A stretch of DNA of 64,000 nucleotides. Origin: Paragordius varius. Taxonomy: Eukaryota; Animalia; Nematomorpha. The translations under genes and the position numbers were made by a program. Shown here piece after piece: positions 18,123-47,550 of this stretch; position 1 is the stretch's first letter; each line of letters begins with the position of its first letter. The notes beneath the pieces were generated by a model, which had not been told where the DNA came from, did not search any database, and saw nothing but the letters and a program-made list of their open reading frames with translations. The stretch lies in the NCBI GenBank assembly GCA_964247055.1, contig OZ176054.1, positions 2,666,001 to 2,730,000 on the forward strand, read 5' to 3'.

Positions 18123-21100
18123 ATCTGAAATTATTACCAATGAAAAATACCACACATAATAAATATTTTTTAGAACATAATTCCATATTTATGAAATATT
18201 TGTCCCTATTTACAATTGGTTGTTTCTCTAATATCGGAATCAATAAAAAACTTGCTTTCTATAAAATATATAATCTCAAAACCTATTATTCTTTCATTGT
18301 ATTAAAACGCAGTTTTGCGCTTTTAATATGAGTTTAATTCCGTAATTAAAACGGTTGACGATATTAACCACACCCAGTTAGAGAATTAATCATAGTATCG
18401 AAAATCTTCTAAAAAAATCATTATGAAGTATTACAAACAGACTAAAATCAATACAAATCTTGCAGTCAGAATAAATAATCATTTCGTTAATCCTATATTT
18501 TTCGCTAGAAAAAATAATTTTAAAAGGAGATTTTATCAATAAAATATTCATAAATTTTCCATTAACCGACTATTAATAATATATGGAAATTCCTAATGGA
18601 ATGATCTTAGTTAAGTTATATACACAATGGATACAAAAATACTGATGAAATACATTTATTGTGAGAGGAAAATGAAACAGGATTATCAAGGTGCTTTTGG
18701 TTTTTCTTACGAGTGATTTAAGAGTTATTTACACTTTTGTTGTAACTGTTCTAAAATAATTTGGAGAAATTTTTTTAGATAAAGTTTAATGCTTGATTCG
18801 AAAAAATACTAAAATAAATTATAAACTACATATAAAAACAAAAATGTTTTTTTTATTAAATTTTAATTTTTAGATCTGGGCTCTGAAAGTGCCTTATATT
18901 TAAATACGTGCAAAATATGCAAGTTCGTTTAAAATAACCGAGATTGTACAAACTTTTAAATAATGCTAAATTTTGACGTCAAAAAAGGTTTTTTAAAAAA
19001 ATGGATATTTGCTAAAAAATATAATTTATAGCAAAATTTTGTCAAAGCGTACATCACACTATCTTGACGCATGATGGATCAGTATAAAAAGAATTTAAAT
19101 ATTATAAAAATACTTTTTCCATATAATTTGATAATGCCGAGCATTTCTCTCACAGAAATTTTAAAATTATTTTTATGTTAAATATTTGTGTTTAATTATT
19201 TAACCAATTTAAACTTCAATTTTAAATGAAAATTTTGAAGCGATAGAAATGAGCATCATCATTAATAACTTAAAGCGTTTTCATAACGTTCCATGATGCC
19301 TAAAAATAGATAGAAGCATGCTCCAACAAAATTATGCTAAAAATTAAATTTTTGAAAAAAGTAAACATTTGTTAAAATATATTTTTAGTTTATGTTAAGG
19401 TACAGCATATATTTAACATTCTTGTCGCGCATCGCGTAATTGTTTATATATATTTTTTGGAATAGCGAAATAATTTGGAACTTTTGGAACTCACATCTAA
19501 ATATTTAAAATTTCTAAAATGTTATTTTGCTTCTTATTATATGCATTTATAATATATTTTGGTGATATTTATTAAAATGAAGCATTTAGCCATCGTTTTT
19601 AAAATAATGTGACCAAATTTTCTCATTTTCTGATATGGAGGACTTACCACAAAAGTGTAAATAACTTCTTTCAATCCTGATACATTTTCCTATCACACTA
19701 TATGTATTTTATTATGATATATATTTTGTGAACACTATGTAAAGACAAACGAAATAATGTTAGAATTAATCACCCATATAACTTTTCTCCTTAAATTTTG
19801 CGGTAAAAGGGATAAGTTGATTATGCTGAATATGTTAATTGATTGAACCCTTTTTTTGATGGTGTTTTACAATATAATTTCGGGTGGTACTCTAAATTGG
19901 TTTGACGGGCCATTAAAATATTTTTTTAAGGGCCGTGCGCCACATAATTTCAAAATTGTATGGATTTGCCAGACCTGCAGATATTTATACACTAAATCAG
20001 TATGAGATTTTTTGAGGTTCGCATATTCTTCATAGCTAAAATGTCTCTTTCCCATTAAGTTGTAATAATATAAATATTTTGATATAAAATTTATCAATCA
20101 TATAATATAAATTTTATGAAATGCATTCTAATACGTCGTCTATATGGACTATCAAGCGATCTTAAATGATTCGTTTATGAGTATGATAAGTCGTATGTTT
20201 AAGTTGAGGGAAAGTAAAAATAACTTATTTTTTCCATATAAAACGACTCATGAAGAAATGGATATTACTAATAAAATCAACCCAATATTAGATAATTTTC
20301 ATCTAACGAAATGAAACTTCATTCAGAATATATGAAATAGCGTTAAAAATTCATGGCCTATCAACATACCTAATATTACGCCACTTGTGCAATTCGGTTT
20401 TGCTCACATCGATTTTTAAATTATTTCAATTTAGAAACTATATAGAAACCGAAAAAAGAATGTGTTATTTCGAATTTCGGCAGGATGTGCCAAATAAATA
20501 TCTAAATATAAAATAATACAAGTTATTCTTGCTGTTTTACCTTAACTAACACCTGCGAGTCGGCACATTCATAAACGAATTTCCATTTAGATATCGCTTC
20601 ATATCCCATATAGACGACAAGATTGACATGTCATATGTGATATCTTGGTTAAATATTGATATTTAATATTGAAATATGTCTAATTATGTGATGCATAACA
20701 ATTAATAAACGAATTATTTTCATACATTTAACTAATGGCACAAATGACATTACTGCAAAATATATGCGAATCTTAAAAAATCTAATGTCCTGATTTAATG
20801 TATAAATAACTTTGTGCTACAAAAAACTATAGGAATTTCTGGTATTATGTGGTGTGCGACCCTTAAGAAATTAAAATAGTTGCTAGCTCTCAAAATAATT
20901 CGGTAAGCCCCACTGATCTAGGTTATGTTGTAAAACAGCATAAAAAATATGTTTAAACAGTTAAAAAACTCAGCATTAATCAACTGTTCAGCTTGGCTCC
21001 TTATACTGAGAAATTCGAGGAGCAAAATTGAATGGTTATTTAGTGATAAAATTAATTTGTTATCTTTACCTTAAATATGTAGGATAAATTGTGTTGAATA

Positions 21101-23181
21101 TCTTTTAGCATTTGAATTAAAGGAAACTCGATATTTTACCAATACTATTGATCGCCACAATTTATTAGTATAAGGAGTAAAGTTGAATGGCTGATTAATG
21201 ATGAACTCAAATTGCTAGCTGTATCTCAAATAAAGTATTGAAATCAGTAGGATAAAGGACTGTTATTATATTGAACATCGCTAATTATTAAGTCGAATAA
21301 ATTCGATTGATGCCGATACCCTTGACCGCCTCAACTCGGAGAAAAGTTGAATGGTTGATTATGTTGAATATGTTAACCTTTTAAACCCCTTTTTTATGTT
21401 GTTTTACAACATATAGATCCCTGGCAGTCACCAATTTATTTTAACTAAAATATTTTTTGTCTTGGGCGTAGCAGATAATATCCAAATTGCCTAAGTCTTA
21501 GCGAGTAGTACACCGAGATTTTTTGAGTGTTGTATATATCATGTAAAATGGCTCTTTTGCCATTTAATTTGATGAAGTTAAATATTTTTATTATAAAATT
21601 TATTATCAAATACACAACCAAACATATTCTAATATTAGACCTTAAAAAGAACTAATCTGGTTTAATACTATGAGTTAATCTTAATCTATATAAGGTATCA
21701 TACGATTTCTAAACGGAATTATTTTATGAATATGCCGACTCGCATGTGGAGATTTAGGGAAAACAGTAAGAAAACCTCATTCATAAATTCTCAGTTACCA
21801 CTCATGAAGAAAATATGGAAATTACTAATGGAATAAACCTAATATTAGGTTATTTTAATCTTATGAGTAATACTTATAATCCAAGATTTAAGAAATAACG
21901 TTGAAAATTCATGGCGCCTGCACATGCCAAATTTTATGCAAAATGTGCAAATCGCTTTTATTTATGGATATCTTGTAAATTCATCGATCTGAATATTTTA
22001 ATTTTGAAGTTATATATAAAACCGTAAACAAGAATGGTATATTGAGTTTAAGGCAAGATAAGCCAATTAAATATGTAAAACATAAGTTATTTTTATTGTT
22101 TTCCTTCAATTTACACATGCAAGTCAGCATATTTATAAATGAATTCCCATTGGAGATCGCCCAATACTCCATATAAACGACATATTGAGATTAGACTGGA
22201 ATGATGTTAAGCCATGTTATGTGATAGCTAATAAATTTAAAAATCAAAATATTTATATTTATCAAACTAAACGACACAAGACACATTTTAACTGTAAATT
22301 ATATTCAACGCTCAAATTCCGGTGTGATTTAATCTTAAATATCTGCGTGCTTGACAAAGAGTTATCCATTTTTTGGAACTATGTTGTGCACGGCCCTAAG
22401 ACAAAAAAAGTTTAAGTTAGCCCGTTGAATTAATTTGGTGACCACCACTGATCTAAATTATGTTGTATTATAAGGCATAAAAAAGGGGTTTAATAATTTA
22501 ACATAATCAGCATTTTCAACCATTCAACTTTAGCCCATACAAAGATTTGGGGTGTACAACAGTATTATTATGAAATCAAGTTTCAAACTTGATTTTTATG
22601 ATATTCAATACAATTACACTCATTCTTTTAGTGATTTTAATGCTGCGTTCAAAATCGGGTATAAATATCCTAATGAAATATATTTTGATAGGAAAATGTA
22701 TGATATAATAGTGCTTTTGGCGCTTACAAATGATTTAGGAAGTTTTTTACACTTTTAAGGCAATTGCGCCATATCCAAAATGGCGACATTTGCGCACATT
22801 TGTTCAATAAATTGACTAAACATTCCATAAAATACATATAAAAACCATTTTGGATGTGAGAAAGTCTCAAATTGTTTTGCCCTCTAACATGGGCCAGTTT
22901 GCTTCACATAAACGCAAAAATGCCGACCGAGATTATGCGATAATTTTATTTATCTCAAAAAAATTCCGAAAAAATGGATTGTTTGCTAAAAATTGAATAG
23001 AAAATTTTTATCAAAGCATAATTCACACTATCCAGGGACATGGATACTATATAAAAAGGAATTAAAATGTTATAAAAATGTTCTTTTGTTAATAATTGGA
23101 TCCGAACATTTCTCTCACCGCAAAAATTTTATTAAAAAAACTTTCGTATAATATATGTTAAATAAAATTGTTGTTATTTAG

Positions 23182-23741
23182 CACTTGGATACAACACATT
23201 CATTTCAGTCCTTCGATTGAAATTGGGGTGGTTGGATATTTGAGGCCTGTTTAAAATTTAATAATTCAAAAGGTATAGAAGTGATTGAAACGAAGGTATT
23301 AGTTTGCACTCATATAGCATTAAATAACCGAAATATAAACAAATTTCTTTCAAAAATACTTAATGTTACTTAATTTAAGGGGACAAAGGTAAAAATTGAG
23401 CCAAAATGACATTGCATAAGTTAAGTATAAAAACAATTTAAAATCTAATATTTTTTTGTTTAAATCAATATTAGATGTGATTTTAATAAAAAATTAACAT
23501 TAATTTTAGCGTTAGAATCAAATAAACACATTTTTTTTCAAAAATGTTATAAAGTGAAATGGCGAATTAATTTGATATGGAACCTTTTTTTTCAAAACTA
23601 AATTTCATTTAGATATTTTGGCTTATTTATATAATTTTTATTGCGACAGAAGCATAATTTTAATTGGGACCGTTGGTGGTTTTTTTTAAATATCAACTTA
23701 AATATAGTCTGGGGTGTTTAGATACCCCAATTTGAATCGTG
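23182..23741. mobile_element. piggyBac-like MITE copy 1 (in array C1 spacer)
   Basis: CACTTGGATACAACAC...CCCCAATTTGAATCGTG|TTAA; homologous to 35933 and 59507 copies; left flank TTAG. Confidence 0.75.
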
Positions 23742-24076
23742 TTAATTTAAATTTGAAAGCAAATTCTGTAGAGATAGCAATGTTCAGCGTTATTTAAGTA
23801 TATGAAAAAGTCTTTCTAATATCTTATGGCGTTTTTTTACCGTTTCCATCATGCGTCAAGATAGTATGAAGCACGCTCCAACAAAATTTTGCTATAAATT
23901 AAATTTTTGAATAAAGTATGCATTTTTTTAAATTCAGTTTATTTAATATTTTTATGTCGAAATCGGCATTTTTCTGTTCATTTTAAGAAAACTAGCCCAT
24001 TTTAGAAGAGCGGAAAATTTTGAGACGTAGTTCACATCTAAAAATTAAAATTTTATAAAAATATTGTTTTGCTTTA

Positions 24077-25218
24077 CACACAGTGTGCAAATAATTTTTA
24101 ACAAAAATTTTATTTCCAGATATATTTTATAACCAACAAATTTATTTGCCGCTAAAATTTTTATTTGTTGACGACCTAGTTTTTAAAATATTGAGGTAAA
24201 ATAGCTATTGGGTAAAGTGAAAATGAAGGATAATTAAGGATATTTAAAAAAATAATGAAAACTCGAGATATTAAAACATTGTCATTTTATCAGATGTTTC
24301 CAATTTATAAATAGCCTAAAATCATGTAGTTAGCGTTATTATTAATAATCAGATCAAAAAATCGTATTTATCCTTTTACATACTTAGTACACAAGATATT
24401 TTTGAAACTATATAAAAATAAATTTTTTTTCTTTATCAAATATCCAATCACTATTGAATCTTAACATTCATATTTTATACAGTAAGAATATCTTATATAT
24501 AAAAATATTGTTTTTTATTATTTCAGTTTTTTGCTATCTGGTTTATATGTGTATGAAAAATTTACTCTTTTGTTTTGGAATCCTACATGATTTGGAACAA
24601 CAAAGTATATAAATTTATACAAAATAAGATTTACGTTTAGTGGAATATAATCCAAAATCCGTAACCATTCAAAATATTATCAAACAAGGTAACTGGAATT
24701 CGTACAAATTATTGGATGATATTCCACTACTTAATCGTATTTTGTATTAACTTATATACTTTGTAATTCCCAATCATGTATTATTCAAAAATAAAACAGT
24801 AAATTTTTCATACACTTTCAAACCAGATGACGTAAAAATCAAAATTAATAACAATATTTTATTAATTTTATTTTGATATTACTGTAGAAAATATGAATTT
24901 TAAAAATTTATTATTATAATATATAAAAAATTTTTGTTTATTAATTTTATTAATGGAAAAGCATTTGATCTGAGTTTAAACAATTAACTGTATGATTTTT
25001 GAATATTTAAAAATTATAAATATATCTGATAAAATGATAATAAATTTTAATGTTTAATCATTAATTTTTAAATATCCTATATTTTTTTGACCCAATTTCG
25101 ATATTCTCTCAATATTCAAAAACTAGGTCAACAAATTTATCATAAAATTAAATTGCTGGTTATAATCTATCTCTAAAAAAATTTTTGTTAAAAAATGACC
25201 CTCTTTTTTGCACACGTG
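24077..25218. mobile_element. ~1.14-kb TA-flanked long-TIR MITE copy 1 (Tc1/mariner-like target)
   Basis: Ends ...GTGTGCAAA / TTTGCACAC...; long internal inverted arms (e.g. 24536-24566 vs 24799-24828); removal rejoins arm W at GCTT-TA-TATATAG. Confidence 0.7.
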
Positions 25219-27885
25219 CTATATATAGTTTATAATATATTTTAGTGGTATTTTTTAAAATAAAACCCTTAGCTTTACCCAAAAATAATAAAATGGGCGC
25301 AAATTTGCCAATTTCGTATGGTGCAGTTACACATAAAAGTGTAAACAACTTTCAATCCTAAGGGTCAAAACAAAAGCCCTTGATAATTTTAATACATTTC
25401 TATTAATTTCATCAGGATATTTTTTATGGAGACAGTGTTCAAAGGTAAATCAGCAGGGTAAGGGCTGCAAATGTATTGAATATCATTAGGCATCAAGATA
25501 CCGATAGTCTTGGGCGCCACATTATTTAGTATAAGGAGCAAATCTGAATGGTAAATTTATACTAAATTTGTTAACTGTTTTCATTCCTTTCAGAGCTGTT
25601 TTACAAAATAATATAGATAAGCGCTCACCAAATTATGTTAACTAAAATATTTTGTATCTTAAGGGCATACCTGATAATGTCAAAGTTGCATAGCTCTTTG
25701 TTCACGTAGTACATGAAGATTTTTTGAGTGTCGCATCTCTTTCGCCATTCAGTCAATAACATAATCATTTTGATTATAAAATTTTTTATCAATCACATAA
25801 CAGAACATTCTCTAATAAACCTTTACAAATACATTTCACTATATGAGCCAATCTTAATCGTCGTCAAGATGGGTATCAAGCAATCTTTAAATAAAATTTG
25901 CCTATGAATATGCTGACTCGCAAGTGTAAGTCTAGAGTAATCATTTATAATTTTCCACTTAAAACGACTCATGAAGAAAATATGGAAGTTACTTATGGAA
26001 TAAAACATAATTCAGTATTTAAAAAATAACGTTGGAAAATGGCATATGACTTGTGCATTGGCTTTGATCATACGTATCTTTTAAAAATTCATCAATTTCA
26101 AAATGATTTCAATTGAGAAGCTACATTAAAAGAGGTGAAACAAGATAAAATATGAAAATGTAAAATAATGTGCTTAAGCTATATTTACATTTTTCACTCA
26201 TATTACACATAAGAATAGGCATTAATAATTGAAATTGCATTTTGGGATCGCAAACCTATATAGACAAATATTAAAATTGGTCTGTCCTGATTTTAAACCG
26301 TTTTAGTTTAATCAAAACAGTTAGTATTGAAATATATCCAATTATGTGATTGATATTATCAAAATATTTATATTGAAATTGGCACAAGAAACATTTTAGC
26401 TGTTAATTAGATGCGAGACTCAACAAATCGTAAGATAATGATGTGAATATTTGCACTGTTGACAAAGAACTTTACAATTTTTAGATTTTGCACAGCCCTT
26501 AAGACAAAATAATATTATATTTAGCCCGTCAATAATTTGATGAATACAATATTTTGTAAAGCGTCAAAAAAGGGATCTATACAGTTAACGTGTTTAGCAT
26601 AAATCAACCATTCAAGATTGCTCCTTACAGCAAGAATTGTGGCGCCAAGAGTATCGGTATCAATCGAGTATTCTTCCAGTTAATACTGATAGTCAATATA
26701 ATTACAACCCTTACCCTACTGATTTTAACTTTAAAACACAGTGTCCACAAAAAATATCCTAATGAAATAATATATATATATATATATATAATCAGGAAAA
26801 TGTATCAGTATTAACATAGGCTTTTGCGTTCCCTACAAGTAATTTACAAAAGTTATTTAGACTTTTGAACCGCTCATCTGGAAATGGCAAAATTTGCACA
26901 ATTTGGTCAAACATTTTTTTGAAAGTTAGAGGCTTAATTTAAAATATGATTAAAATTATAAATTGCATATAAAAGCAAAACAATATTTTATAAAATTTTA
27001 ATTATTAGTAGATTCCGACCGAAATTTTTTCACCCTTTCTAAAATAGTATACTCTTATAAACGCAAAAATGCTAAGATTGGCAATAAATATCGTAAATAT
27101 ACACTAAATTTTGACATAAATTAAAGATTTTTCCTGAAAAATGGATATTTTAGATTTAAATTTATAACAAAATTTTGTTGAAGCGAAGTTAATACTATTC
27201 TGAGGAATTATGAAAACGGTACAAAAACGCCATATGTTAAAACATAATCCTATTTTCAATGCTGAACATTATTATCACCTCAGAATTTTGATTAAAACAT
27301 TCGTCCGTCTTTAAATGTAAGAATATAAATTGTAATATTCTACAAAGTGACAAAATTTAAACAGGATTTAAATAATTAAAATGGTGTGATTTTATTGTTC
27401 ATCATCATCAACATAAAAAAGTGTTTTTTAATATCTCAAAGCGTTTGCCCTTTCCATGAAAAAAATAGTATGAAATACGATTAACTATAAATTAGATTTT
27501 TAAGCAAAATATTCATTTTTACTAAAACAAACTTTTTTTGTTGTCAAAAATTTAGCATTTACTTAAAAGTTTTATTGAGCTTCGGCATTTATACGTTTTA
27601 TAATAACTGTTTTAAAAGGGGAATAATATATGGGATTTCAGAACCTACATTTAAAACAAAAATTCTATAAAAATATTGTATTGCTTATGCAGTTTATTAT
27701 ATAATTTAGTGATACTTTGAATGAAGCATTCAGCTTTCACAAAATTTATTTAACAAAATAGGAGCAAATTTTGTCATTTTCTATTATAGAGTTGTTATCA
27801 AAAGAATAAATAACTTTCACTGGTAAGGGCCAAAACTAAAAGCACTATAAAAATTATGATACATTTTCCTATCAGAATATATATA

Positions 27886-29032
27886 CTGTGTGCAAAATTT
27901 TTTTTAACATTTTTGTTAAAGACCAGTGAAGTCATTTGCCGTAATAATTTTTATTTGTTTGGGACCTAGTTTTAGAAATATTGAGGAAAATCGAAATCAG
28001 GCAAAAAGTGAAAATTAAGGATAATAAGGATAATTCAAAAAATAATAATAAAAGTTACGATATTATGGTTTATTATCATTTTAGAAGGTATTTTAATATA
28101 TAAATAGCCTAAAATCATATTTCAAAAATGGCGTTTTTCTTTTAACACAGACATATTTTATCAAACTATATTAAAATAATTATTATTTACTACCTAAACT
28201 CATTGTTAAAATCTTAATATTCATATTTTATTTTGTAAAAAAAAACTTATATATCATAAAAATAAAAATATTGTTTTTTATTTTTACATTTTTTTGTCAT
28301 CTGGTTTATGACGGTGAATTTCACATGAGCGGGATTTATAAATTATAAAATAATTTACAATTCATGGAAAATCAAAACCAAAATCCGTACACAACTCAGT
28401 AAAAATATTAATTTGTGTTAAAACAAACTTATTACAAGGATTTGTAACGATTGCTGGTTGATATTCTACTACTTTTAAATTTTCTATTGAATAAATTATA
28501 TACTTATGAGATTCCAATATAAACAGTATTAAATTTTTTGTACACTCATAAACCAAATGACAAAAAAATACAAAATTAAAAAACAATATTTTTTAGTTTT
28601 ATTTTGATATAGAAACATTTTTACGTAATAAAATATGAATGTAAAGATTTTAATAGTGAACTAATTAGTAAATAATCAAAAAAATATTTTAATATAGTTT
28701 CATAAAAATATTTGTCTATTACATGTGTTAAAAAACGCCATCTTTTAAACTAAGATTTTGTACAAACACTAACAATGTTATAGGCTATTTATATATTAAA
28801 AATATTGTCTTAAATGATAATAAACCATAATATCTCAACTTTTATCATTATTTTTTGAATTATCCTTATTTATTCTAAATTTTCACTTTTTGCCCGATTT
28901 CGATTTTCTCTTAATATGAAAACTAGGTCGTCAATAAATAAAATTTTTTGCGGCAAATAAATTTGCGTGTCATAAGCTATCTCAGGAAAAAAAACTTTTG
29001 TTAAAAAATTAACCCTCTTTTTTGCACAAGTG
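27886..29032. mobile_element. ~1.15-kb TA-flanked long-TIR MITE copy 2
   Basis: TA|CTGTGTGCAAAA...TTTTGCACAAGTG|TA; homologous to 24077-25218 but at a different position in arm W. Confidence 0.72.
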
Positions 29033-31702
29033 TATATGTATATATATTTCATCAAGATATTTTTTACTCCGATTTTGGATGCAATGCAAGATACACTATA
29101 AATTACAGCATTAATTAGCTATTCAACTTTGCTCCTTAAATTACTCGGTCTAAGGAGCATTTAAATGTTTAAACCTCTTGTTTTACGACATAATTTGGGT
29201 GGTGCTCAACATAATATAAGCTAACTAAAATATTTTTTGTCTCAAGGGGCGCGTGCATCATATAATTCCTTAATTTGCATCTTTCAAACATGCAGAAATT
29301 CATTCACTAAATCACTACATCGAGGTTTTTTGAGAATCACATATAATACAGATGTCTCTTCTGCATTCAGTTTAATTTGCAAAAATATATTATTATAATA
29401 TTTACATTATCAATCACACAACTTGACGTATTCAAATAACTATTAATATTAAATCGACCTGGTTTAATTTTAATACGTTGTCTAGATGGGTTATCAAGGG
29501 ATAATGCATCGTTTATAAATATGCCGACTTGCATGTTGTAAGTTGAAGAAAAGAGTGATTAATAAATTCTCCACTTAAATCAATTCATGAAGAAAATATC
29601 ATAATTACCGATGGTGAACCATTATTAGGTGATGTATTGAAATGAAAATTTGAATTCAGGATTCAGTTAATATAAAGATTGTCTTACTTTCGAAATTCAT
29701 AATATATAGACCAAATATTAGGCAACTTGTGCCATTGAGTTTTTATCATCCGTAGCTTGGTGATCATTGATTTTAAAAACGATTCATTTTAGAAGCTTTA
29801 TATAAATTGGAAATAAGAATGGGATTTGAGTTTGGCAAGAAGTTATTCTTATTGTTTTCCCTCTTACACATGCAAGTCGGCATATTTATAAACAAATTTC
29901 CATTTAGAGATCTTTTAATAGCCCATATACACAACGTATTAGGACTAACCTAGGATTATGTTAAACCATGTTATGTGGGAGCTATTAATTTTATAATAAA
30001 AATTTTTATATTTATCATAAATGACACACGACACATTTTAGGTGTTAATTTATGCAACCCTCAAACTATTTCGGTGTACTGATTTAATTACATTTTCCTA
30101 GTAGAATATATAATACATCAGGATATTTTGTGGAGGCATTCAAAGGTATAGAAATCAGTAAAACAAGGGCTGTAAATGTATTGAATCTCATTAAGTATCA
30201 ATTTGATTAAATACGTTTCGATACCCCTCATGAGCACCACAATTTCGCGCTATAAGTAGCAAGTTCGAATGGATTAAGGCAGAATATGTTAACTGGTTAA
30301 ACCCCTATTAATGCTATTTTACAACATAACTAAGACCAGTGGCGGTCACCAAATTATAAATATTTTTTATCTAAAGGCGTGCCAGATAATCTCAAATTGC
30401 TAGTTAATATGAGAAACGTAATACACCGAGATTTATTGAGTGGTCGCATATAATGGGAAGGTAAAATGTCTCTTTCGCCATTGAGATTAATAAATATAAA
30501 TATTATTATATAATTAATTGTCAATTAACTCAACATAGTTTAATATTAACCACTAAAACTGACATGATTTAACATCATGAGAGGCCAACCTTAATATATC
30601 GTCTATATACGGCATCATGCGCTCTCTAAGTAGGAATTCATTTATGAATTTGCTGATTCACATGTGTAAGTTGAGTAAAACAGTAAGAATAACTTTATTC
30701 ATAAATTTTTCAGTTAAAACGACTTATGAAGAAAATATGATAATTTAATGGAATAAAATTTAAAATTCAGTTTTTGTATAGCGTTGAAAAATCATCGTAT
30801 ATGGACATACCAAATATAATCAATTTGTGCAATTCGGTTTTGATCATACGTATCTATCTGGTTAATTCATCTATTTCAAAAATGGTTTCAATTTAGAACT
30901 TATACAAAGATGAAAGATATCTGGCAGGATGTCCAAATAAATATGTAAATATAAATCCATAAGCTCAATTCTGTTGTTTTCTCGCAACATACATATTTGA
31001 GTCGGAATATTCATAAATGAAATTCCATTTATAGATCGTCATCCCATTTAGAATATTAAAATTGGTATATCATGATGTTAAACCATGTTATTTTATTATA
31101 AATAGTTAGTATTAAAATATACCCAATTAAGTCATAGATATGATTAAATTTATAATTATCAAAATAAATGGCACAAGTGACAATTTTAACCGCCAATTAT
31201 ATGGTAGACCCAAAAATATACTGATTTAGTGATTAAGTGCACTGTAAAGAATGCAAATTTCGGAATTATGTGGTACATATATCTTAAGGCAAAAAATATT
31301 TTAGTTAGCCCATCGGAATAATTTGATAAGCACCCCTCATCTAAATTATTTTGTAAAACAGCATCAAAAAAGGGATCGAAACAGTCATCATGTTTCGCAT
31401 TAATTTACCATTCAAGATTGCTCCTTATACAGAGCAATTGTGGTGTTCAGGAGTATCGGATTGAGTTTTCTTCAAATTGATAATAATAAATGATATTCAA
31501 TACAATTACAGTCCTTACCCCAGTGGCGTACCGAGCATTTGCGGCGCCCGGGGCATAAAACTTTTATGGCGCCCCCCCCCTCCCTTTTTTTTAAAAGCCA
31601 ATAATACAATTTAGTAAAAAAAATACAAACGTTGTAACTTAAACACCAAAGATAAGACAGCACAGTCATATAAATTTTAAATTTATATATATATATCTAT
31701 AT

Positions 31703-33318
31703 CAGGGCTTCTTAAACTATGAGTCGCGACCCCATTTGGGGTCGCGAGTGATAAAATTAAACAAAAAATGTTTTTTAACTTGTAAAATGTATATGTTTAT
31801 AAAATGGAAAATGCGGCTTTGTATGTTTCCGGAAAACCGGTTGACCCATTCACATCCAAATGTCGAAAAAATAGAATCATTAATAAATGCCCCGACAATA
31901 GCTTCGTCTTTTTTTGAATTAAGCCCCCAGTTCGGGCCCACCCCGTGTAAAAAATGGGTTTTTTTGAAAAATCGTGTCTTTGAGACAATTTTCCTGACAA
32001 CGTGTTGGACCATTCAATTTCACATATATTTTTTTACTTATTTCAATTGCGCCGAACGCTCGCTTTTTTTATTTCGGCCCCCTTTTTACCCGTTCCCCCC
32101 GTAAAATGCCATTTTTTTCAAAAAATTGTCCACAAAAATAATTTTTTGAATCTATTTTTCGCCCATGGTACGAGACTCTAAAAATTCAATAAAGATCTAA
32201 AAAATCAATAATGATTCCAGGTATTCTCCGTAAAAACGCAAAAATTTTAATCAATCGTTTTATTTGTATCAGCTGTTGGGTAAGTAGCTACTCGCCTAGC
32301 GCCACCATATCGAAATTGCGTTGTTTAGGAGTTAATTTTCAAAAACTTATCAGGCCATATAAGTTTAATATAGGCCTGAAATATTACCCGTAAAAGTTAA
32401 AAATTTAAGTCCAGCGGTTTTTTCAAATTAGCCGTTAATTAGGCCCTTTACGCCCAAAAATGCGCTATCATTTAACTATTATTTAGTTTTGAAGCCATTC
32501 CAAAAACTATTAATAACATAAGGAATGAATGATGATTCCAGTTATTACCCTATAAAGGCAATTTTTTTACGAATGTCTTTTTTATATTGGCTTCTGGTTA
32601 GAAAGCTACTCGCCAACAACTGCTCCACCGTATCGATACAGCGTGACTTTGGAGCCAAATTGAAAACCTATGAGTCTAATAGGAACAATGAATTCCATGA
32701 TAATTCCAGATAATCCCCATATGAGGGCAAAAATTTTAACCAGCGCTTTTTTATACCTGCCCTGGGTTAGGAGTACCCGCCAAAAACTGGTCTACTATAT
32801 AGAAATTGCTTTGTTTTGGAGCTAATTTACAGAAAATTATGAAGCCATATGAGCTCTTGAAACCTGGAAATATTATCCGTAACTAGTTAAAAAAAATCCG
32901 GAGTTTTTTATAGCCGTTAATTTGCGGCCTTTATGCCCTAAAAATACGCCATCTTATAACAATAATTTAGTGTTGAGGTATTTTTTCGAAACCCCATAAA
33001 TGGTATCAAAGATGATTCCAAATATTTGTCATTAAGAAGCCATACGAGTTCAGTTAAACACATTTCTGAGGAATTTGTATAATATTATTCTTTCCTTTAA
33101 AAAGGCCACCGATCATTATATCTTGTATAAATTTACTATGAATCAGAAGATGTTAAAAAATTATAAAAAATGTAGATTTATTTTTTTAATCTCTTAAAAC
33201 CGAAATAATCTTGATAAATATTATCAACAACATTTATAAGCGTTTTTCGAATCGTTGGGGTCGTTGAGACTCGCTATCATAAATGGGGTCGGGAATTTCT
33301 AAAGTTTTAGAAGCCCTG
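31703..33318. mobile_element. hAT (Charlie-like) MITE nested in 31521-34392
   Basis: TIR CAGGGCTTCTTAAACT / rc CAGGGCTTCTAAAACT; TSD ATCTATAT / ATGTATAT (7/8). Confidence 0.85.
31788..33051 (+). mobile_element. 3'-truncated Helitron nested in the hAT MITE
   Basis: Degenerate 5' end TGTATATGTTTATAAAATGGAAAATG; body matches the 10899 copy, then ~3-4 partial internal units matching 322-2473 in reverse; no hairpin or CTAG. Confidence 0.75.
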
Positions 33319-33387
33319 ATGTATATGATAGTAAATTTATTCATTTTTAAATGCATAAATATTCTAATAAATTCTATAATATGGAAA

Positions 33388-33953
33388 TCTATATATTAAT
33401 AAAAATGGAAAGTGGTAACTTTGTGATCTGTTTCCGAAAAACATGTAGACCCATTCAAATCCAAACATCGAAAATATATAATCATTAATAAATGCCCCGA
33501 CAATAGCTTCGCCCTTTTTTGAAATAGGCCCCCAGTTCGGGCACACCTGGTGCAAACGGTTTTTTTTAAACAGAAGTCCACAAAAATCGTGTCTTTGAGA
33601 CAATCTTCCGGAGAACGTGGTCCATATTTCAAATGTGATTTTTGTTTACTCATTTTCGATTGCGCCGAACATGGTCGTTTCGCTTTTTTAATTTAGGCCC
33701 TACGCTCTCCTTATAAATTGCCATTTTTTTAAAAAAAAAAAGTCCACAAAAATAATTTTTTAAATATATTTTTCGCCCTAGGTATGAGACCGTTTGGCCC
33801 AAGTAAACAATATATTCGTATGAATGCACCGTTTTAAAATTTTATGAGATCATAGCTATTAAGTATTGTTTCGAAATACTTTTTTCAAATAGCGCCCACC
33901 CCCCCTCCCACCCGGAAATCCGAAGGACTTCCTCGGGCTGCTTAGCAGCCCGA
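33388..33953 (+). mobile_element. Helitron copy lacking terminal CTAG
   Basis: A|TCTATATATTAATAAAAATGG at 33388; hairpin TCGGGCTGC-TTA-GCAGCCCGA at ~33933-33953. Confidence 0.75.
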
Positions 33954-35932
33954 TAATGATTTAAAAAATAATTGTAAATCTAGGAGAATTTTACAATACA
34001 TAAACAGAATTATAATGAATTTTATTTAATAAAATATTAATTATATGAAGATTTTATCACTTGAAAAAGAAAAAGTAAGAGAAAAAATATCTTTTAAGTA
34101 AAAAATTTTCTGGCTTTTGATATTTCAAAATTATCAATTATATTATTAAATATCATATTTTTCTTTTTCCACTCTCAACAATGTTAAGTCATTCTATTTT
34201 ATGGTACTAATTAGGTGAATAATATAGAGTATATATTTTAGGGATTATTACCTAATTGCTGAAAAATCTCATTTAAAAGTTCTTATTATTTTTGCATAAT
34301 TAAAATTTAATTTTAAAAAATCATTTAGGCGCCCCTAAATAACGGCGCCCAGGGCATGATGCACCCCCTTCCCCCCCCTCGGTACGCCCCTGCCTTACCC
34401 TACTGATTTAAAGATAACACAGTGTCCACAAAAAATATCCCGATAAAATATATATCCTGATAAAAATGTATCAGGATTATCATAAGCCTTTGGCTTAAAC
34501 CCCTACAAGTGTTAGAAAATTATTTAGATTTTTGCGGTCACTGGTCCATATCAGAAAATGGCATAACTGAGCAATTTGGATAAATATTTGTATTTGAAAG
34601 CTAAAGGTTTTATTCGTAAAAATATCATCAAAATATTTAATTAACTCTAGATAAAAAGCATAACATTTAAAAATTTGCATTATTAGATCTAGACTCCAAA
34701 AGTTCGAAATTTTTTAGCCTTAAAAATGGCATAATTCTCTTGAAATTAACGCTAAAATGCAGAGATTCGCAATAAAAATAGTAAATATATGCTAAATTTT
34801 GACATCAATCAAAAAAGATTTTTTCGGAAAAATGGAATTTTGCATTAAATTTTTTTTGTAAAAAATACAAAGTTAATTCTATTTTGAGGCCTGATGAACG
34901 GTACAAAACACCATATGATATTATAAAAACATTTTTCAAGATATTTCAATGATGCTAAACATTTTTATCACCTTAGGATTGTGATCAAAACACTCGTTGG
35001 TAATTAAAGAATATAAAATGATTAAATAAAAATTTAAGAGCAAACAAACCTTTAAATTATTCTAGGGGAATATTAAAGTTCATCATCATCGATATAGAAA
35101 AGGTGTTTTTTTAACGCGTTTGATACTGTTTCCAAGAAGTTTTAAAATATTATGAAATACGATTTATCAAAATCTTACTATAAATTTGATTTTTAAGCAA
35201 AAAAATTATTTTCAAAAAACACTTTGATGTCAAAATTTAGCTATTAGATAAATTTTTTATTGAGCAATTCCGGCATTATATGTTTATTTTAAAATTTGGA
35301 GCTTATTTTAAAACGTGATAGAAAAAATTCTATGAAAATATTGTTTTGCTTATACATTTTATTTATATAATTTGGTGATTTTTGTGGAAATTTAGCTTTC
35401 ACCAAAGTTTGTTAAACAAAATATACGGAAACGCTATTTTCTAATATAGAGGAGTTCCAAAAATTATTAACTTTCTCATTCGTAAGAGCCAAAACCAAAT
35501 GGACCATAAAAATTATGATGATTGCAAGATACGCTATCACATTCCACCATTAATTAGCCATTCAACTTTGCTCCTTAAATTTCTCGGTATAAGGAGAAAT
35601 TAATGGTTGATTAATGCTGATTATTTTAACTGTTTTAACACCTTGTTATACGACATTTAGATCAATAATGCCCACCAAATTATTTTGTTGGACTAAATAA
35701 AATATTTTTTGGCTTAAGGGCCGAGTAAATTACATAATTTTAAAATTGCATATCTCTTTGTCAAGTAGCCGACATTTATACACTAAATCACTATACCGAA
35801 ATTTTTAGAGGGTCGCATATAATACGCATCTAAAGTATCTATCTGGTAATTGGACATATTTTAATATTAACTCTTAATGTTACCAACCATTTTCAACATC
35901 ATGACAGGCCAATCTTTCTAGCGGTGTATTTA

Positions 35933-36511
35933 CACTTGGATACAACACATCCATTTTAGTCCTTCGATTCAAATTGGGGTAGTTGGATACCCCAGGCCTG
36001 TTTAAAAAAAAATTATTTAAAAAATATGGAATGAATTGAAACCATGGCAAAAATTTGCACATTTATGACATCAATGAACCGAAATATAAAAAAAATTTCA
36101 TTCAAAAATACTTGATATTACTTATTTTTGGGTAAAACCTTAACGTAAAAATTTAGTCAACATGACATGTGTGCTTTAGCCAAATTTAAAAATAGTACAA
36201 AATAAACCAGTTTTTCTTTTTCTATCAATCTTAGATGTGATTTAAATGAAAAATTTGCTTTCATTTTAGCTTTAAAATCAAATAAACACGATATTTTGCA
36301 AAAATGTTATAGAATAAAAATGGCGTCGAAGTAGTTTGATATGGAACTTTTTTTTCAAAACCAAATTTTATTTAGATATTTCGGCTTATTTATATAGTTT
36401 TTATTAGGATAGAGGCATAAATTTAAATTGGGACCGTTTCTTTCAGTAGTTTTTTAAAAATTTTAATTTAAATATTGTCTGGGGTATTTAGATACCCCAA
36501 TTTTCGAAGTG
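35933..36511. mobile_element. piggyBac-like MITE copy 2 (in array arm W)
   Basis: TTTA|CACTTGGATAC...TTCGAAGTG|TTAA; 579 bp. Confidence 0.8.
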
Positions 36512-37065
36512 TTAATGGAAATTTGTTTATGAATATGCTGAATCACATGCATAAGATGGAAAACATTAATAATAACATTACTCATAAATTCCACTCAAAA
36601 CGCCTCCTGGAAAAATGTGGAAATTACTAACGAAATGTACACAATTAATTTTTATCTAATAAATGAAACTTTAAATTCAGGATTTATGAAATAAAGTTGA
36701 AAATTCATGGCATATGCACACACTTAATATTAAGCAACTTGTGCAATTCAATTTTGACCATGTGTACCTTGATAAAAAATTCATCGTTTTCAAAAAATAT
36801 TTCAGAAGCTTACATATAAATATACAGCAAAGAAGTATGGTTTTTTGAGATTTAGAAAAATGTGCCCATATATGCAAATAAAAATGTGTTCAAGTTATGC
36901 TGCTTTCTCTCAACTTACACATTCGAGTCGGCATATTGATAAACTATTCCCATTTAGACGTTTGATACTCTATATCTGCTCACCAAAAAAATTTGACGGG
37001 CCAAATAAAATATATTTTTTTTTCGAGATCTATGAAGCTTATAATGGCAAATATTCCATAGCTAT

Positions 37066-38376
37066 TTGGAGAACATGTTAAACCATTCAATTTCAAATAT
37101 GATTTTTGTTTACTTATTTTTGATCGCGCCGAACATAGTCGTCTCACTTTTTTGATTTAGGCCCTCTTTTTACCCGCTACCCCCGTAAAATGCCATTTTT
37201 TTCAAAAAACACAAAGTCCACAAAAATAATTTTTTGATTGTATTTTTTTTCCCAAGGTATGAAACTGTAAAAATTCAATAAGGATTCCACGTATTTCCTG
37301 TTAAAAGGCAAAAATTTTAGTCACGCGTTTCTTTGATGATAGCTGCTGAGTAAAGAGTATCTATCATATGTATAGGATGTTAAAAAATATATGGATAATA
37401 AAACATTATTCATGGTAATCTATATATTTATAAAAATGGAAAATGCTGGCTTTGTGATCTGGTACCGGAAAACCGGTAGACCCAATCAAATCCAAACATT
37501 GAAAAAATATATTCATTAATGAATGCCCCGACAATAGCCTCGCCCTTTTTTGAAATAGTCCCCCAGTTCGGGCCCACCCCGTGTGAAAAACGGGTGAGAC
37601 AATTTTCTGGAAAACGTGTTGGACCATTCAATTTCAAATATGATTTTTGTTTACTTATTTTTGATCGCGCCGTACATAGTCGTCTCATTTTTTTGATTTA
37701 GGCCCTCTTTTTACCCGCTACCTCCGTAAAATGCCATTTTTTTCAAAAAACACCAAGTCCACAAAAATAATTTTTTGATTGTATTTTTTTCCCAAGGTAT
37801 GAAACTGTAAAAATTCAATAAAGATTCCACGTATTTCCTGTTAAATGCAAAAATTTTAGTCAAGCATTTCTTTAATGATAGCTGAGTAATGAGTATCTAT
37901 CATATGTATAGCTATAGGATGTTAAAAAATATATGGATAAAAAAACATTATTTATGGTAATCTATATATTTATAAAAATGGAAAATGCTGACTTTGTGAT
38001 CTGGTACCGGAAAACCGGTAGACCCATTCAAATCCAAACTTCGAAAATTTATAATCATTAATGAATGCCTCGACAATAGCTTCGCCCTTTTTTTGAAATA
38101 GGCCCCCAGTTCGGGCCCATCCCGTGTGAAAAACGGGTTTTTTCTGAAAACAGAAGTCCACAAAAATCGTGTCTTAGAGACAATTTCCCGGAGAACGTGT
38201 TGGACCATTCAATATCAAATATGATTTTTGTTTACTTATTTTCGATTGCGCCGAACATAGTCGTCTGGCTTTTTTAATTTTTTCCCACTTTTTACCCGCT
38301 CCCCCCGTAAAATGACCCCCCCCCAGATTTCCGAAGGACTTCCTCGGGCTGCGTAGCAGCACGAGATTTACGCTAG
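37066..38376 (+). mobile_element. Tandem Helitron-derived array (~540-580-bp period) ending in a complete 416-bp Helitron (37961-38376)
   Basis: CCATTCAA anchor at 37083, 37624, 38205; A|TCTATATAT starts at 37419 and 37961; hairpin plus CTAG|T at 38373-38377. Confidence 0.85.
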
Positions 38377-40016
38377 TATTATATATTTTGAGACTTTATT
38401 AGCTATTAAATATGAAAGAACAAAACTTAATAAAATTATGGTGATTAGTGTATGTAGCCATGCCTCATTTGACAGTATCCAGCCAAAAGCAACATTTTTT
38501 TATCCAAATGCAACATTTTTCAAATCAAGGAAAATGTTGCCTTTGCTTGAAAAAATGTTGCGATAAGTTGAAGAAATGTTGCCTTTGATTGAAAAATATT
38601 TTATAAAAAAATTTTACCACAAGCGGTGCACAACATAACTAAAGTTATAGCGTAATATTGCATACAGCTTCAATCAAAGCTTTTGGTCGTCAAACAAAAA
38701 ATGCTATATATGCGCTTTTTATTACTCCACAGATCTGTGGAAAAATAACGTTCTATCAAATTTTATAGTCGTTTTAAGATCATATTTGGGGATTCAGTAA
38801 CCCTGATAACAGAAACCTTATTTATTCAACACTCGTGTTTTCACTAAAATAAAATTATGAAATTTAGATGATATTATCGTGATCTGTATGGGCACAAATA
38901 ACATCTCATTTCTTTAAGTCATAGCGGTTGTTCTTATGATTGTGACTAACAAAAATGTGGGTGGCAGAAATCAAAAAGCTAAAAGTTTAAACAGAATCGG
39001 ATCAATGCAACTATGTATATTTATTAACTATCTCAAGAAAATCGGTAAATCTGTAAAATGCAACGAAAAGAATAATGGAATATAAACCTAAATTGGTGTA
39101 ATTATCTTATATTTTATCATAACATTTTCCAAAAAAATATTTTTTAACTTGATGTATCTATAATGGCGATATTTATCAATCTACATAAAAATATTGGGAA
39201 AACAAGATTTATTCCTTTAACAAAAAATATATTTTTTTGTGACCAAACAAATAAGTTATTATTTAGCAAGATAACATTAACATGCTGCTACATAACTGTA
39301 AAAATCAATAAATGCTTAACTATTTTGGCACACAATGAAAAAAACTGTATTTTCTTACGCATATCTTTGAAATAATCTTTCACAAATCTTTTGTCCTAAC
39401 ACATAAAAAATCAAGGTTCGCTTCTTCTAAGCCAAAGTCAAAAGTGAACGATTTTAGTCAAAACTGTTGTAGTTTCGGTTTCCTAAGAAAGAACTGAAGG
39501 CCAAATGGCTTTCAATTTGTTTGTTATTATTAATAGATAGTTTAAATTTCATATTTTTGAAGAATTATCTTAAATATAATTTTATAATTTAAACACAGAA
39601 AAGAATATTAAAAGATAAACATTTAGTTAAAAAGGGAATGAAAATAATTGATTTTGGAACTGTTAGAAACCAAAGTTCCAGCCTTATTTAAATTTTTTGA
39701 TTCCAATCATATTAAAATATTTTATATCATGTTCATGAAATGAAAAGGTCAGTCATGGAATTTTATATGGAAAAAAAGGAAACCGCTAGAGAGTATAAAA
39801 ATTTTTACATTAAAATAATTAATTTTTCGTCGGCATTCCATACATATGAACCCTCAAAGGTGTCATAAAACTTTTTTGTTTGAATCATAAAAAAACAAAT
39901 ATATACTAGCTTTCATCAAAAATTTAATTAACTCTGACAGTTAATTAGGGATGAGACAAGTTAATATCGTGTTTTAATTTTCATTTTTTTTGTATTTTGT
40001 GAAAAAATATAAATTG

Positions 40017-40020
<4 letters not shown>

Positions 40021-40056
<36 letters not shown>
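40021..40056. repeat. (TA)18 microsatellite
   Basis: Direct reading. Confidence 0.95.
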
Positions 40057-40059
<3 letters not shown>

Positions 40060-40763
40060 AAATCGATGAAAATATATAGAATGATGGGATTACTCTCTCT
40101 ACCATCATCATTTTTTTCGTTTTATTTCATACATGTTGTATGCTTCTGTCTCTAAATAAGGTTCTGATGATATGTTATTCTTTGCACGCGACATAAAACA
40201 GAGTGTAAAAACTGTGTTATCATTATTAATTACCTTTGTTTTCGTATTATCCATGTGATTTTGTCATACTTTGATAGTTAGTTTTTGACCCGAATATGTT
40301 TAACACTAATATCTAATTTATATTTTGCAAAAATGTCCCTGGACAAACATGTTGAATAATTATACCAAGTTTTTTACAGCCAGCCCTCATTATCCATGAT
40401 TAATGATATTATCAATTTTAATATAGGGTTATCGATTCGATTAATTATAAATATATTTTAATCAATAGTTGGAAAACGTACATATATATTCAATAACCTA
40501 ATGTGTTGTTTATGGAGAATTCTGTTGAAATGATTAATTTAGACTGCTAACTTGCCTAATTAATTTTACAATGAATTTGTTAAGAAAAAAATGATAAATT
40601 CGTTTCCAAATATTTAAAACAAACAACCATAACAACACCAGTAAAAACTTTTTTCACTTTCATGAAAATGAACTTTGCAATCGATTCCATTTGTTAGCGA
40701 TGAAATATAGTATATTCGTTTATGAAAAGAATTCTCATCGGATTTTATCATCAGTACATATAA

Positions 40764-46700: not shown

Positions 46701-47550
46701 TTCATAACTATTGTTAAAATTATTTTTGTTTCCATATGATATAATAAGAGTCCAGTTGTAATTTCGTAAGTAGGGTCTTGTACCAACTTTGATCAGCGAA
46801 ATTTTGTAAACTTTTATATACAAATAAAAAATAAATACCGTTAAAAAATAAGAATTCACCAATAATGTTATTACAGGGGTCTGACACACATGCATAGATT
46901 AAACGCTTTTTAGGTTATTGTTATTGGAATAAGAATCTCCTCTCTACAATAAATTTATTTTTCGATTGTAAAGCCTAAAGCTAATACGGTCTCAAAAAAA
47001 TTTTTAAGCCTTAACCTAGCTAAAGGGTTAGTGCTACATGGTGTTGGTTGGATAACTATTGTTAGGTAATGATTCTATGTGCAAAAACATTCCTCGAGTT
47101 TTCCCAGGACATTGATCAAATATTTTTAAAGCACTTCGTACCATTTTTTACCATTTCGGTTTAAGCATGCAATATAGTAAGGTCAACACTTATTGAATTA
47201 AAAGATCTAAGATATTTTTCATCAATGACCTAAAAATCACGAATTGGAACTACATCGAATTAGAAAATTATACATATCTTATTGCTGTTGCTGTAAAAAT
47301 ATATTGTCCATCCACCTGCTTGTAATCCGAATATGGTTTTGTTCTATTTGTATAATTTTTATACTTAATTATTTTTTAAGGCCCTGTTATTGGATTGCAT
47401 TTTTATGGCCGGAATGCAATTCAAAAATGCACAAACACTCTTAAGTGCCTGGTGACAGGAACTCCTGGTTTAGTTTACATTACAACAAACCCTCAAACCT
47501 CGGAACAAATCATTTTAAAATTTTTCAAACAAAAAGATCATGCTCTTTAA
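40764..47550 (+). CDS. RP2: RP2/XRP2 (ARL3 GTPase-activating protein; TBCC domain + NDK-like domain), 11 exons, ~668 aa
   Basis: Exons 40764-41017, 41560-41680, 43126-43217, 43776-43948, 44036-44181, 44405-44897, 45118-45264, 45898-46124, 46325-46408, 46514-46613, 47381-47550 (2007 nt, phases consistent). MGCLVS acylation motif; KFSWEKR; NCKLFIFD...GPTKNSVYVRNCENCLIQTACHQFRIRDC...PALESSTQIKFACF; FNNKWSEVVDF; KCLVVFF; YLIQTR; GPVIGLHFYG, all aligning by eye with human RP2. Confidence 0.93.

Follow-up and report, generated by a model that had tools for sequence, protein, structure and literature searches.

Positions 18623 to 36975 of the window (the whole stretch of Paragordius varius DNA that was analysed, 64,000 nucleotides in length) hold an old, decayed tandem array of ~18 kb with a basic unit of ~2.5 kb. 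Judged from its sequence features, this is probably, at a likelihood of around 0.7, a decaying array with higher-order structure, the unit of which comprises two non-coding foldback elements, A and B, that were copied together. Self-BLAST of the window recovers matches in direct as well as inverted orientation throughout 18.6-37 kb, 300-1500 nt long and 62-79% identical, which in their length, identity and E-values (1e-14 to 1e-134) lie far above chance. The A and B parts were mapped with nhmmer profile scans combined with exact end-finding, and the resulting features are as follows, with the strand where one was assigned:

18623-19739: A1, full-length foldback of family A (a-C1-a'), matching the profile on both strands (E 1e-145), termini located
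19797-21023, plus strand: B1, type Bv, without the first ~100 profile positions (B profile 106-1336, E 3e-137)
21087-21209: B-end fragment between B1 and B2 (B profile 36-150 on the plus or 1276-1394 on the minus strand)
21231-22640, plus strand: B2, full-length B, type Bf (B profile 3-1424)
22643-25437: A2, full-length A split by D1 and Cfb1, three nhmmer pieces covering the A profile
~23177-23749, plus strand: D1, small inverted-repeat element of ~585 bp at the centre of A2
24077-25218: Cfb1, foldback of a third family (Cfb) nested in A2 (self-inverse match 24095-25194)
25439-26728, plus strand: B3, full-length B, type Bf (B profile 2-1421)
26737-29086, plus strand: A3, full-length A with Cfb2 in its right (TA)n tract (E 9e-236), the left terminus lying at 26737 and the right one ending at 29086
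27886-29032: Cfb2, second Cfb copy, nested in A3 (self-inverse match 27934-28958, 71.6%)
29087-30085, plus strand: B4, type Bv, truncated at profile position 1115 (match 29161-30085, profile 154-1115)
30093-30139: A remnant, right-end piece of an otherwise mostly deleted A copy between B4 and B5, aligning to the A2 end at the A2-to-B3 junction
30140-31524, plus strand: B5, full-length B (B profile 2-1422), C2 centre at ~30683-30974
31525-34388: EF block, later insertion of 2.86 kb splitting the B5-to-A4 junction
34418-35520, plus strand: A4, A copy with truncated right tip (A profile 1-1225, E 5e-153)
35521-36975, plus strand: B6, type Bv, last unit of the array, split by D2 (pieces 35578-35917 and 36512-36973)
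35927-36519: D2, insertion in B6, ends located

With the five insertions removed, the array reads A B B A B A B B A B, or A B (A) B A B A B (A) B A B when the mostly lost A copies are included, with all B on the plus strand. The preliminary description had proposed ~1-kb inverted arms (W) alternating with two spacers in the order w'-C1-W-C2 and onward, and this order matches letter for letter when A is read as a-C1-a' and B as b-C2-b'. The arm and spacer sizes given there are borne out once the five nested insertions are taken away, these being real, discrete elements (D1, Cfb1, Cfb2, the EF block and D2), while the proposed C1-to-C1 spacing of 2.5 kb or 3.7-4.0 kb agrees with insertion-free distances of 3993, 2471 and 3611 nt between A centres. 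Neighbouring arms are indeed inverse, as self-BLAST anti-diagonals cross the A/B joins (e.g. 25392-25701 versus 26462-26781), and the small hairpin described within an arm is present at 35558-35596. The claim that every spacer points the same way stands for C2, where the plus strand scores far above the minus strand for all six centres in nhmmer, but not for C1, which is weakly palindromic with a poorly defined direction and looks inverted in A2. Palindromic amplification, whether by breakage-fusion-bridge cycles or hairpin-primed copying, was considered and rejected, as it would alternate the spacer orientation, whereas the six C2 centres all face one way and only A2 appears flipped among the A centres. 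The ~1-kb arm W is a seam between two foldbacks and not a unit of descent: it consists of the right half of A (a-C1-a', ~1.15 kb) with the left half of B (b-C2-b', ~1.4 kb) directly attached, which is a caution for the reading of such patterns from sequence alone.

Element A belongs to a high-copy dispersed family, for which the genome search returned 1826 first-look candidates, the best of which were scored, a count bounded by search sensitivity. The termini, 5'-CACAGTGTCC and CACTGCGTCC, align across copies, many full-length copies match on both strands, and the boundaries of dispersed copies coincide, at query positions 128 and 1277. The element is a nearly complete palindrome of ~1.15 kb made up mainly of two long inverted arms (self-inverse alignment 26777-27885), with C1 as its near-palindromic centre, and copies match the profile on both strands over nearly their full length. 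Directly before the terminus, the dinucleotide TA is found at about 10 of 15 independent ends, well above the expectation for a genome of 73% A+T, among copies that are 25-35% diverged. These termini and the usual TA flank suggest that A is probably a cut-and-paste-type foldback of the Tc1/mariner kind. The flanks of dispersed A copies showed no match to B or the array or to each other. The centre of A2 aligns better in reverse to A4 and S_A1, so that this copy looks inverted relative to A3 and A4, and its terminal variants also point to a flip, with the AAATCGGG variant at the left end and the plain one at the right. The apparent opposite orientation of A2 is not what simple tandem copying would give, and an extra inversion step is needed for it.

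Element B, a palindrome of ~1.4 kb, is centred on a copy of a further dispersed repeat, family M (~720 bp), to which B profile positions 589-1235 (the centre and one arm) match. Among the best candidates of the genome search, full-length B was seen at two loci only, C5:2.685-2.697 Mb and C5:3.000-3.010 Mb. The outer arm gave four candidates genome-wide, within the limits of search sensitivity, all at these two loci, and the outer ~190-nt arm ends are confined to the present array and to a second one on this contig, 300 kb distant. All B copies sit in an array context. A transposon and an inverted duplication of host flank around an M copy are both candidate origins. The array contains six B and four to five A units and the second locus four B; the latter holds a block A-B-B-A that is about 80-84% identical to the array, while its inverted duplicate there stands at about 88-89%. 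The B-end fragment at 21087-21209 has a counterpart at the same place in the second locus.

The history of the array is most clearly recorded in its junctions. The monomers repeat head to tail, with A and B abutting at a distance of 0-12 nt, and the unit junctions are homologous, falling into a few idiosyncratic types that each occur in two or more units. The B3-to-A3 junction matches that of B5 to A4, the A2-to-B3 junction that of the remnant to B5, and the A3-to-B4 junction that of A4 to B6, including the same B truncation, while the A1-to-B1 and B2-to-A2 junctions match counterparts in the second locus. The B tree likewise groups the copies block by block, with (B1,(S_B1,S_B4inv)) and (B2,(S_B2,S_B3inv)) at a support of 1.0, S_B2 and S_B3inv being the two Bf copies of the second locus, and (B3,B5) at 0.96, and in the A tree A3 pairs with A4 and A1 with S_A1 (both 1.0). 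The shared junctions and block-wise trees thus point to a composite unit that was duplicated in tandem and in segments as the array grew. The deep pairs are of similar depth in A (66-73% identity) and B (68-74%), as would be expected had the two been amplified together.

The A tree also places all array copies in one clade (0.91), but on a very short branch that includes the dispersed copy L022, and A1 is 67% identical to A3 as against a mean of 72% to dispersed copies. For these reasons the A tree alone is compatible with independent insertions during a burst of the family, and an array of B palindromes might have existed first, into which mobile A copies then inserted independently, in either orientation, at the palindromic B-B join through a sequence or cruciform preference of the transposase. 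Such a course would accord with the evident mobility and abundance of A, the seemingly opposite orientation of A2 relative to A3 and A4, array A copies that are about as distant from one another as from dispersed copies, the B-to-B join forming a palindrome centre and the location of two D elements at A palindrome centres as well. It is nevertheless unlikely, since in 12 of 12 cases the flanks of full-length dispersed A copies are neither B-like nor mutual inverted repeats, and so show no such target preference, and since accidental features (the truncated B, the truncated A4 and the A remnant) are common to the junctions of several units, a pattern accounted for by copying but not by independent insertion. 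The parallel sister pairs, A3+A4 with B3+B5 and A1+S_A1 with B1+S_B1, also speak against it.

The preliminary description had further suggested an integrated concatemer of a small circle bearing inverted repeats. A rolling-circle concatemer of a 2.5-kb circle with two inverted repeats, from a plasmid-like replicon or an excised chromosomal circle, that later re-integrated would fit the ~2.5-kb head-to-tail period and the topology of two inverted repeats and two spacers, and circular intermediates are one proposed route of amplification into tandem arrays. This suggestion finds no positive support and is very improbable: as had been noted, the array region lacks a credible ORF, the longest reaching 122 aa, and ten ORFs tested from it gave no Pfam match above threshold, leaving nothing with which a plasmid could replicate or recombine. 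Both halves of the unit are ordinary genomic repeat families, the array has a 5-kb double-unit structure and visibly grew further through the copying of multi-element chromosomal blocks, and units that are 25-35% diverged would make any such event ancient, with no specific trace left. Overall, repeated insertion or a plasmid-like circle suits the evidence less well than duplication of the composite unit. The alternative class suggested at the outset, a foldback element amplified in tandem, came close to the evidence, except that the unit is two different foldbacks end to end. The statement that the array matches no repeat class does not hold, as it is made up of foldback/MITE-type elements and can be classed overall as a tandem array of transposon origin with higher-order structure.

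The copies, already described as visibly diverged, are just 65-75% identical, and the array is for this reason considered old and not homogenised; it does not show the great length, high copy number and uniform monomers of satellite DNA. Repeat-rich regions are prone to assembly error, yet a collapse or expansion is unlikely given that units differ by 25-35%, and an artefact of mis-joined repeat reads is scarcely credible, as reads from units with such differences and private insertions and deletions would place uniquely and a related array with the same junctions occurs 300 kb away at 80-84% identity.

The insertions add a further layer. D1 is 78.6% identical to 35927-36525 and 74% identical to 59503-60088 in self-BLAST, and has the ends CACTTGG...AAGTG beside TTAA-like flanks; the D family is dispersed. 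The Cfb family, with the terminus CACACAGTGTGCAAA in Cfb1, returned 847 first-look candidates genome-wide, and Cfb2 is 74-77% identical to many dispersed copies. The EF block carries 11-nt inverted ends (GGCGTACCGAG) and is flanked on both sides by a target duplication of ~12 nt (CCTTACCC..).

The locus shows how two adjoining foldback transposons can become a single repeat unit that is then multiplied in tandem, and the order of these events can be read from the array. The A+B composite was first copied in tandem, and a ~5-kb double unit, consisting of A, full B, A and truncated B, is present twice in the right-hand part. Most of two A copies was lost through deletion, which produced the 'B B' spots, and five younger transposons then landed in the array. 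The A-B-B-A block was later copied 300 kb away and then duplicated there in inverted orientation. The copying may have proceeded via unequal crossing-over or replication slippage, perhaps helped by the palindromes, while A2 could have been flipped by recombination between the flanking inverted B arms. The array would be without a function of its own, drifting neutrally.

A functional role was weighed in terms of RNA folding. The expectation that any transcript would fold into kb-long dsRNA is sound in so far as a long imperfect hairpin is predicted, but overstated, as the arms show 65-72% complementarity and perfect inverted matches in the array reach at most 26 nt. The arms 30165-30682 and 30975-31516 of B5 are mutually inverse in self-BLAST, and this unit is predicted to fold into one long imperfect hairpin. 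The locus might on this account be kept because its hairpin transcripts feed small-RNA silencing directed at the dispersed families A, M and Cfb, much as for hairpin-RNA loci or Mu killer, and the array does contain inverted copies of at least three dispersed families in units that are each still predicted to form a long imperfect hairpin. This model is exceedingly doubtful, given the limited arm complementarity, array copies that are 25-30% diverged from dispersed copies (a poor basis for small-RNA targeting), an array in which conservation or homogenisation is not seen, and a neighbouring control stretch of the window with more short inverted matches than the array (185 versus 112). The broader proposal of either a maintained hairpin-RNA locus silencing three dispersed foldback families or a vestige of two foldbacks that amplified together as an extrachromosomal circle is likewise improbable as a model.

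Among known systems, the yeast 2-micron plasmid and plastid genomes have just the formal topology of one unit in common with the array (two inverted repeats and two unique regions), although inverted-arm recombination of the kind that this topology allows, flipping a centre, may be what befell A2. Unlike them, the array has no genes and no replication or recombinase functions, and its components are genomic repeats. A closer topological likeness is found in the 1061-bp satellite of Tribolium brevicornis, with inverted segments of ~470 bp, and in TmSat2 of T. madens, which also has long inverted subunits (PMC13081366). These satellites share the head-to-tail succession of arm, spacer 1, inverted arm and spacer 2 and the potential for hairpins or cruciforms, but are megabase-scale, homogenised and probably centromere-associated, whereas the present array is low-copy, 65-75% identical and located at two sites on one contig, with ~1-kb arms that are seams of transposon halves and no centromere link.

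The components themselves resemble the foldback transposons and long-inverted-repeat MITEs, such as Drosophila FB, Galileo and Tetris, A and Cfb being non-coding and almost wholly two inverted arms, with fixed termini, hundreds to thousands of dispersed copies, mutual insertion and a usual TA flank. They differ in that their arms have no internal tandem subrepeats of the kind usual in FB and Tetris, and are known here as non-autonomous copies, 25-35% diverged, with no autonomous partner or transposase linked. The locus adds to the signs of a genome unusually rich in palindromic transposons. The TIR-220 arrays of Tetris are transposon-derived tandem arrays (PMC4079207), and tandem transposon dimers can expand into arrays (PMC5932611). 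As in these cases, mobile-element sequence became a head-to-tail monomer by chromosomal copying, with higher-order units and later block duplications, but the monomer here is two whole foldbacks of different families, and not a subrepeat or a single element, and compared with a usual satellite this is a short array, with about 10 units over 18 kb and one daughter locus, very old and not homogenised. While indicating no new kind of element, mechanism or function, the array is a curious case of a known route from mobile DNA to tandem repeats.

A tandem array of foldback elements, transposon-derived and of a known kind, occupies approximately 18.6-37 kb of the window. In self-BLAST, numerous segments of 300-1500 nt in this region match one another in direct or inverted orientation (62-79% identity), bearing out the pattern proposed in a preliminary description, and self-inverse stretches of ~1.1-1.4 kb occur at 24095-25194, 26777-27885, 27934-28958 and 30165-30682 (against 30975-31516). 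Two units make up the array: A, a foldback of ~1.15 kb with the structure a-C1-a', and B, a foldback of ~1.4 kb with the structure b-C2-b', where C1 and C2 are the centres. Profiles of these two units were used in an nhmmer scan and the ends were then set by motif.

Units of the array and later insertions (window positions)
18623-19739: A1
19797-21023: B1
21087-21209: B-end fragment
21231-22640: B2
22643-25437: A2
~23177-23749: D1, later insertion inside A2
24077-25218: Cfb1, later insertion inside A2
25439-26728: B3
26737-29086: A3
27886-29032: Cfb2, later insertion inside A3
29087-30085: B4
30093-30139: A-end remnant, 47 nt
30140-31524: B5
31525-34388: 2.86-kb block, later insertion between B5 and A4
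34418-35520: A4
35521-36975: B6
35927-36519: D2, later insertion inside B6

Written out in arms and centres, these units give exactly the string of inverted arms and spacers that had been described, the ~1-kb arm W corresponding to a' plus b, and the five insertions noted at that time are all located. With the insertions removed, the A centres lie 3993, 2471 and 3611 nt apart, in agreement with the spacings first estimated. The window as a whole belongs to an AT-rich animal genome and is non-coding and rich in repeats, with a G+C content of ~27% and only three ORFs of at least 120 aa in 64 kb. Neither tRNA genes (ARAGORN) nor matches to structured RNAs (Rfam, gathering thresholds) were found across the whole window, and none of the ten ORFs tested for coding remnants has a Pfam match above threshold, as the earlier reading of no credible ORF had anticipated.

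Unit A belongs to an independent mobile family. In the searched genome (110.6 Mb, 44 contigs), the query 26709-27860 yielded 1826 first-look candidates, and many of those that were scored are full-length and match both strands. Under sensitive search settings the dispersed copies start and end at identical positions, with the termini 5'-CACAGTGTCCAC.. or 5'-CACTGCGTCCGAAATCGGGGG... The 1.5-kb flanks of dispersed copies have no match to B, and TA directly precedes the terminus in about ten of 15 independent ends. The constant termini, the unrelated flanks and the TA before the ends mark A as a non-coding foldback element that probably belongs to the Tc1/mariner kind, which targets TA. Both the TA flanks and the CAC(A/T)G tip agree with Tc1/mariner, any likeness to the Tc1 end sequence being a lead only. 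Siting of A at the centres of pre-existing palindromes, or a palindrome running on into the flanks, was rejected, as inverted flanks above the cross-locus control were found in none of the 12 dispersed copies. A part of A recurs in family G, a ~1.5-kb non-palindromic dispersed repeat (copies 74-80% alike) of which the first ~500 nt are a single A arm; it is found at L010:1407-3109 and at seven similar dispersed loci (L007, L008, L011, L023, L025-L027), with a tandem pair in L025. W (a' plus b) as a dispersed unit in its own right was likewise rejected, as G carries one A arm and its remainder is without similarity to B or to the dispersed family M.

Full-length B has a far narrower distribution, being confined in the genome search to this window and to 3.000-3.010 Mb of the same contig (C5, OZ176054.1). 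The outer 200 nt of B, used as a query, identified four places genome-wide, all within these two loci, while B profile positions 589-1235, which span C2 and the inward portion of a single arm, match family M, which is ~720 bp long with copies 80-90% alike. Given this two-locus restriction and the inner match, B is, judging from sequence, a palindrome around an M-like copy, with outer arm ends of ~190 nt that are specific to its locus. Examples of M occur at L042-L060 (e.g. L044:1161-1909) and at C5:12033478-12034197 and 12039061-12039818. A third array at C5:12.03-12.05 Mb was considered and rejected, since this region contains M-type copies and A fragments alone, without the B foldback.

The uniform direction formerly ascribed to both spacers holds for C2, all six copies of which point the same way, but not for C1. 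Unit A is palindromic over nearly its whole length and C1 is simply its less symmetric centre, so that its direction is weakly defined. Palindromic amplification of the breakage-fusion-bridge type, which predicts spacers of alternating orientation, was rejected on the orientation of the six C2 copies. A functional hairpin-RNA locus was also considered, and the predicted fold of B5 is a single long hairpin, although much interrupted. Complementarity between the arms is only 65-72%, no perfect inverted match exceeds 26 nt, and short inverted matches are more numerous in a control stretch elsewhere in the window (40000-58371) than in the array, with 185 inverted 14-mers within 3 kb against 112, making such a function highly improbable. 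Inverted repeats are common throughout the region, and a further self-inverse stretch of ~670 nt is present at 49194-49863.

The junctions record how the units were multiplied. Adjacent A and B units are separated by 0-12 nt, and their junctions fall into a few accidental types, each common to at least two units: B3>A3 equals B5>A4, A2>B3 equals that between the A remnant and B5, and A3>B4 equals A4>B6, with the same internal cut position in B. The A1>B1 and B2>A2 junctions are found again in a smaller array built from these units (the second array) at ~2998050-3009700, within C5:2990001-3020000 (L061+L064+L062). In the B tree, B1 and B2 are each joined by a different two of the four copies at the second locus (support 1.0), with identities in these groups of 81-84% between loci and 88-89% among the second-locus copies; B3 and B5 form a pair (0.96), and deep B pairs are ~70% identical. 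The A tree contains the pairs A3+A4 and A1+S_A1 (support 1.0), S_A1 being the first A copy of the second array. The common junctions and the paired trees show that blocks of several elements were copied. In the second array, an A-B-fragment-B series is present in both orientations as a large inverted duplication, with arms 88-89% alike on either side of a 3.4-kb spacer that has no match within the window.

A1 and A3 share 67% identity, while array copies and dispersed copies share about 72% on average. As copies from separate parts of the array are no closer to one another than to dispersed ones, amplification must be about as old as the spread of the family, and the A tree alone is also compatible with independent insertions. 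It unites all array copies in a clade (0.91) that has a very short branch and also contains one dispersed copy, and, being nearly star-like, it has little power to separate these two histories. It is nonetheless unlikely that A copies inserted independently, and site-specifically, into a pre-existing B array, given that accidental junctions are common to several units and that dispersed A copies show no target preference. The earlier interpretation stands as regards a tandem array built from foldback elements, but a concatemer of an inverted-repeat-bearing circle is very unlikely: the region has no genes, the component parts are genomic repeats and block copying on the chromosome is visible. 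An assembly error is extremely improbable, because the units differ at a quarter to a third of positions.

For the tandem array of foldback elements, the following history is proposed. An A+B composite would have been amplified in tandem in ancient times, after which a double unit of ~5 kb (A, full B, A, truncated B) would have arisen; the right half of the array contains it twice. Two A copies would then have been largely deleted, which accounts for the spots bracketed in the preliminary description as w'-w-C2. Transposons would have inserted later, and an A-B-B-A block would have been copied 300 kb downstream and duplicated there in inverted orientation. By the alignment of its centre, and also by the side that each terminal variant faces, A2 appears reversed with respect to A3 and A4; dispersed copies combine the terminal variants in every possible way, so that these are a soft orientation marker. 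The whole of A2 may have been flipped by recombination between the inverted B arms on either side.

Among the later insertions, Cfb, which sits within A2 and A3, represents a third foldback family, and a younger one (847 first-look candidates; 74-77% identity between copies), the tip of which (CACAGTGTGCAAA) resembles that of A. D is a dispersed small inverted-repeat element of ~585 bp adjoining TTAA-like flanks, with copies at 23177-23749, 35927-36519 and 59503-60088 in the window and at C5:2994624-2995195 and 2998658-2999225 at the second locus. Two of these five copies lie precisely in the middle of an A palindrome (A2 and S_A1), a possible sign that D prefers hairpin tips. The 31525-34388 block has a higher G+C content, 11-nt inverted ends (GGCGTACCGAG) and a duplicated target of ~12 nt (CCTTACCC..), the length of which suggests a Mutator-like element. 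It contains copies of two other repeats of the window, repeat E (31785-32295 and 33380-33793) and repeat F (32012-33028), the latter inverted relative to the partly tandem F copies at 737-2474 (about 68-73% identity). Directly right of the array, at 37067-38314, lies a tandem repeat with a period of 541 nt (copies 87-95% alike), single relatives of which occur at 10895-11419 and inside the same block.

A foldback transposon, Tetris, is the source of tandem arrays in Drosophila virilis (PMC4079207), and tandem transposon dimers have been described as seeds of arrays (PMC5932611). In Tribolium, satellites are known whose monomers combine long inverted subunits with two spacers, the most prominent case cited being T. 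brevicornis, with inverted segments of 470 bp (PMC13081366). In contrast to these satellites, the array in P. varius is short, old and unhomogenised, is confined to a pair of sites on a single contig and has longer arms (~1 kb), which represent the seams of two elements.
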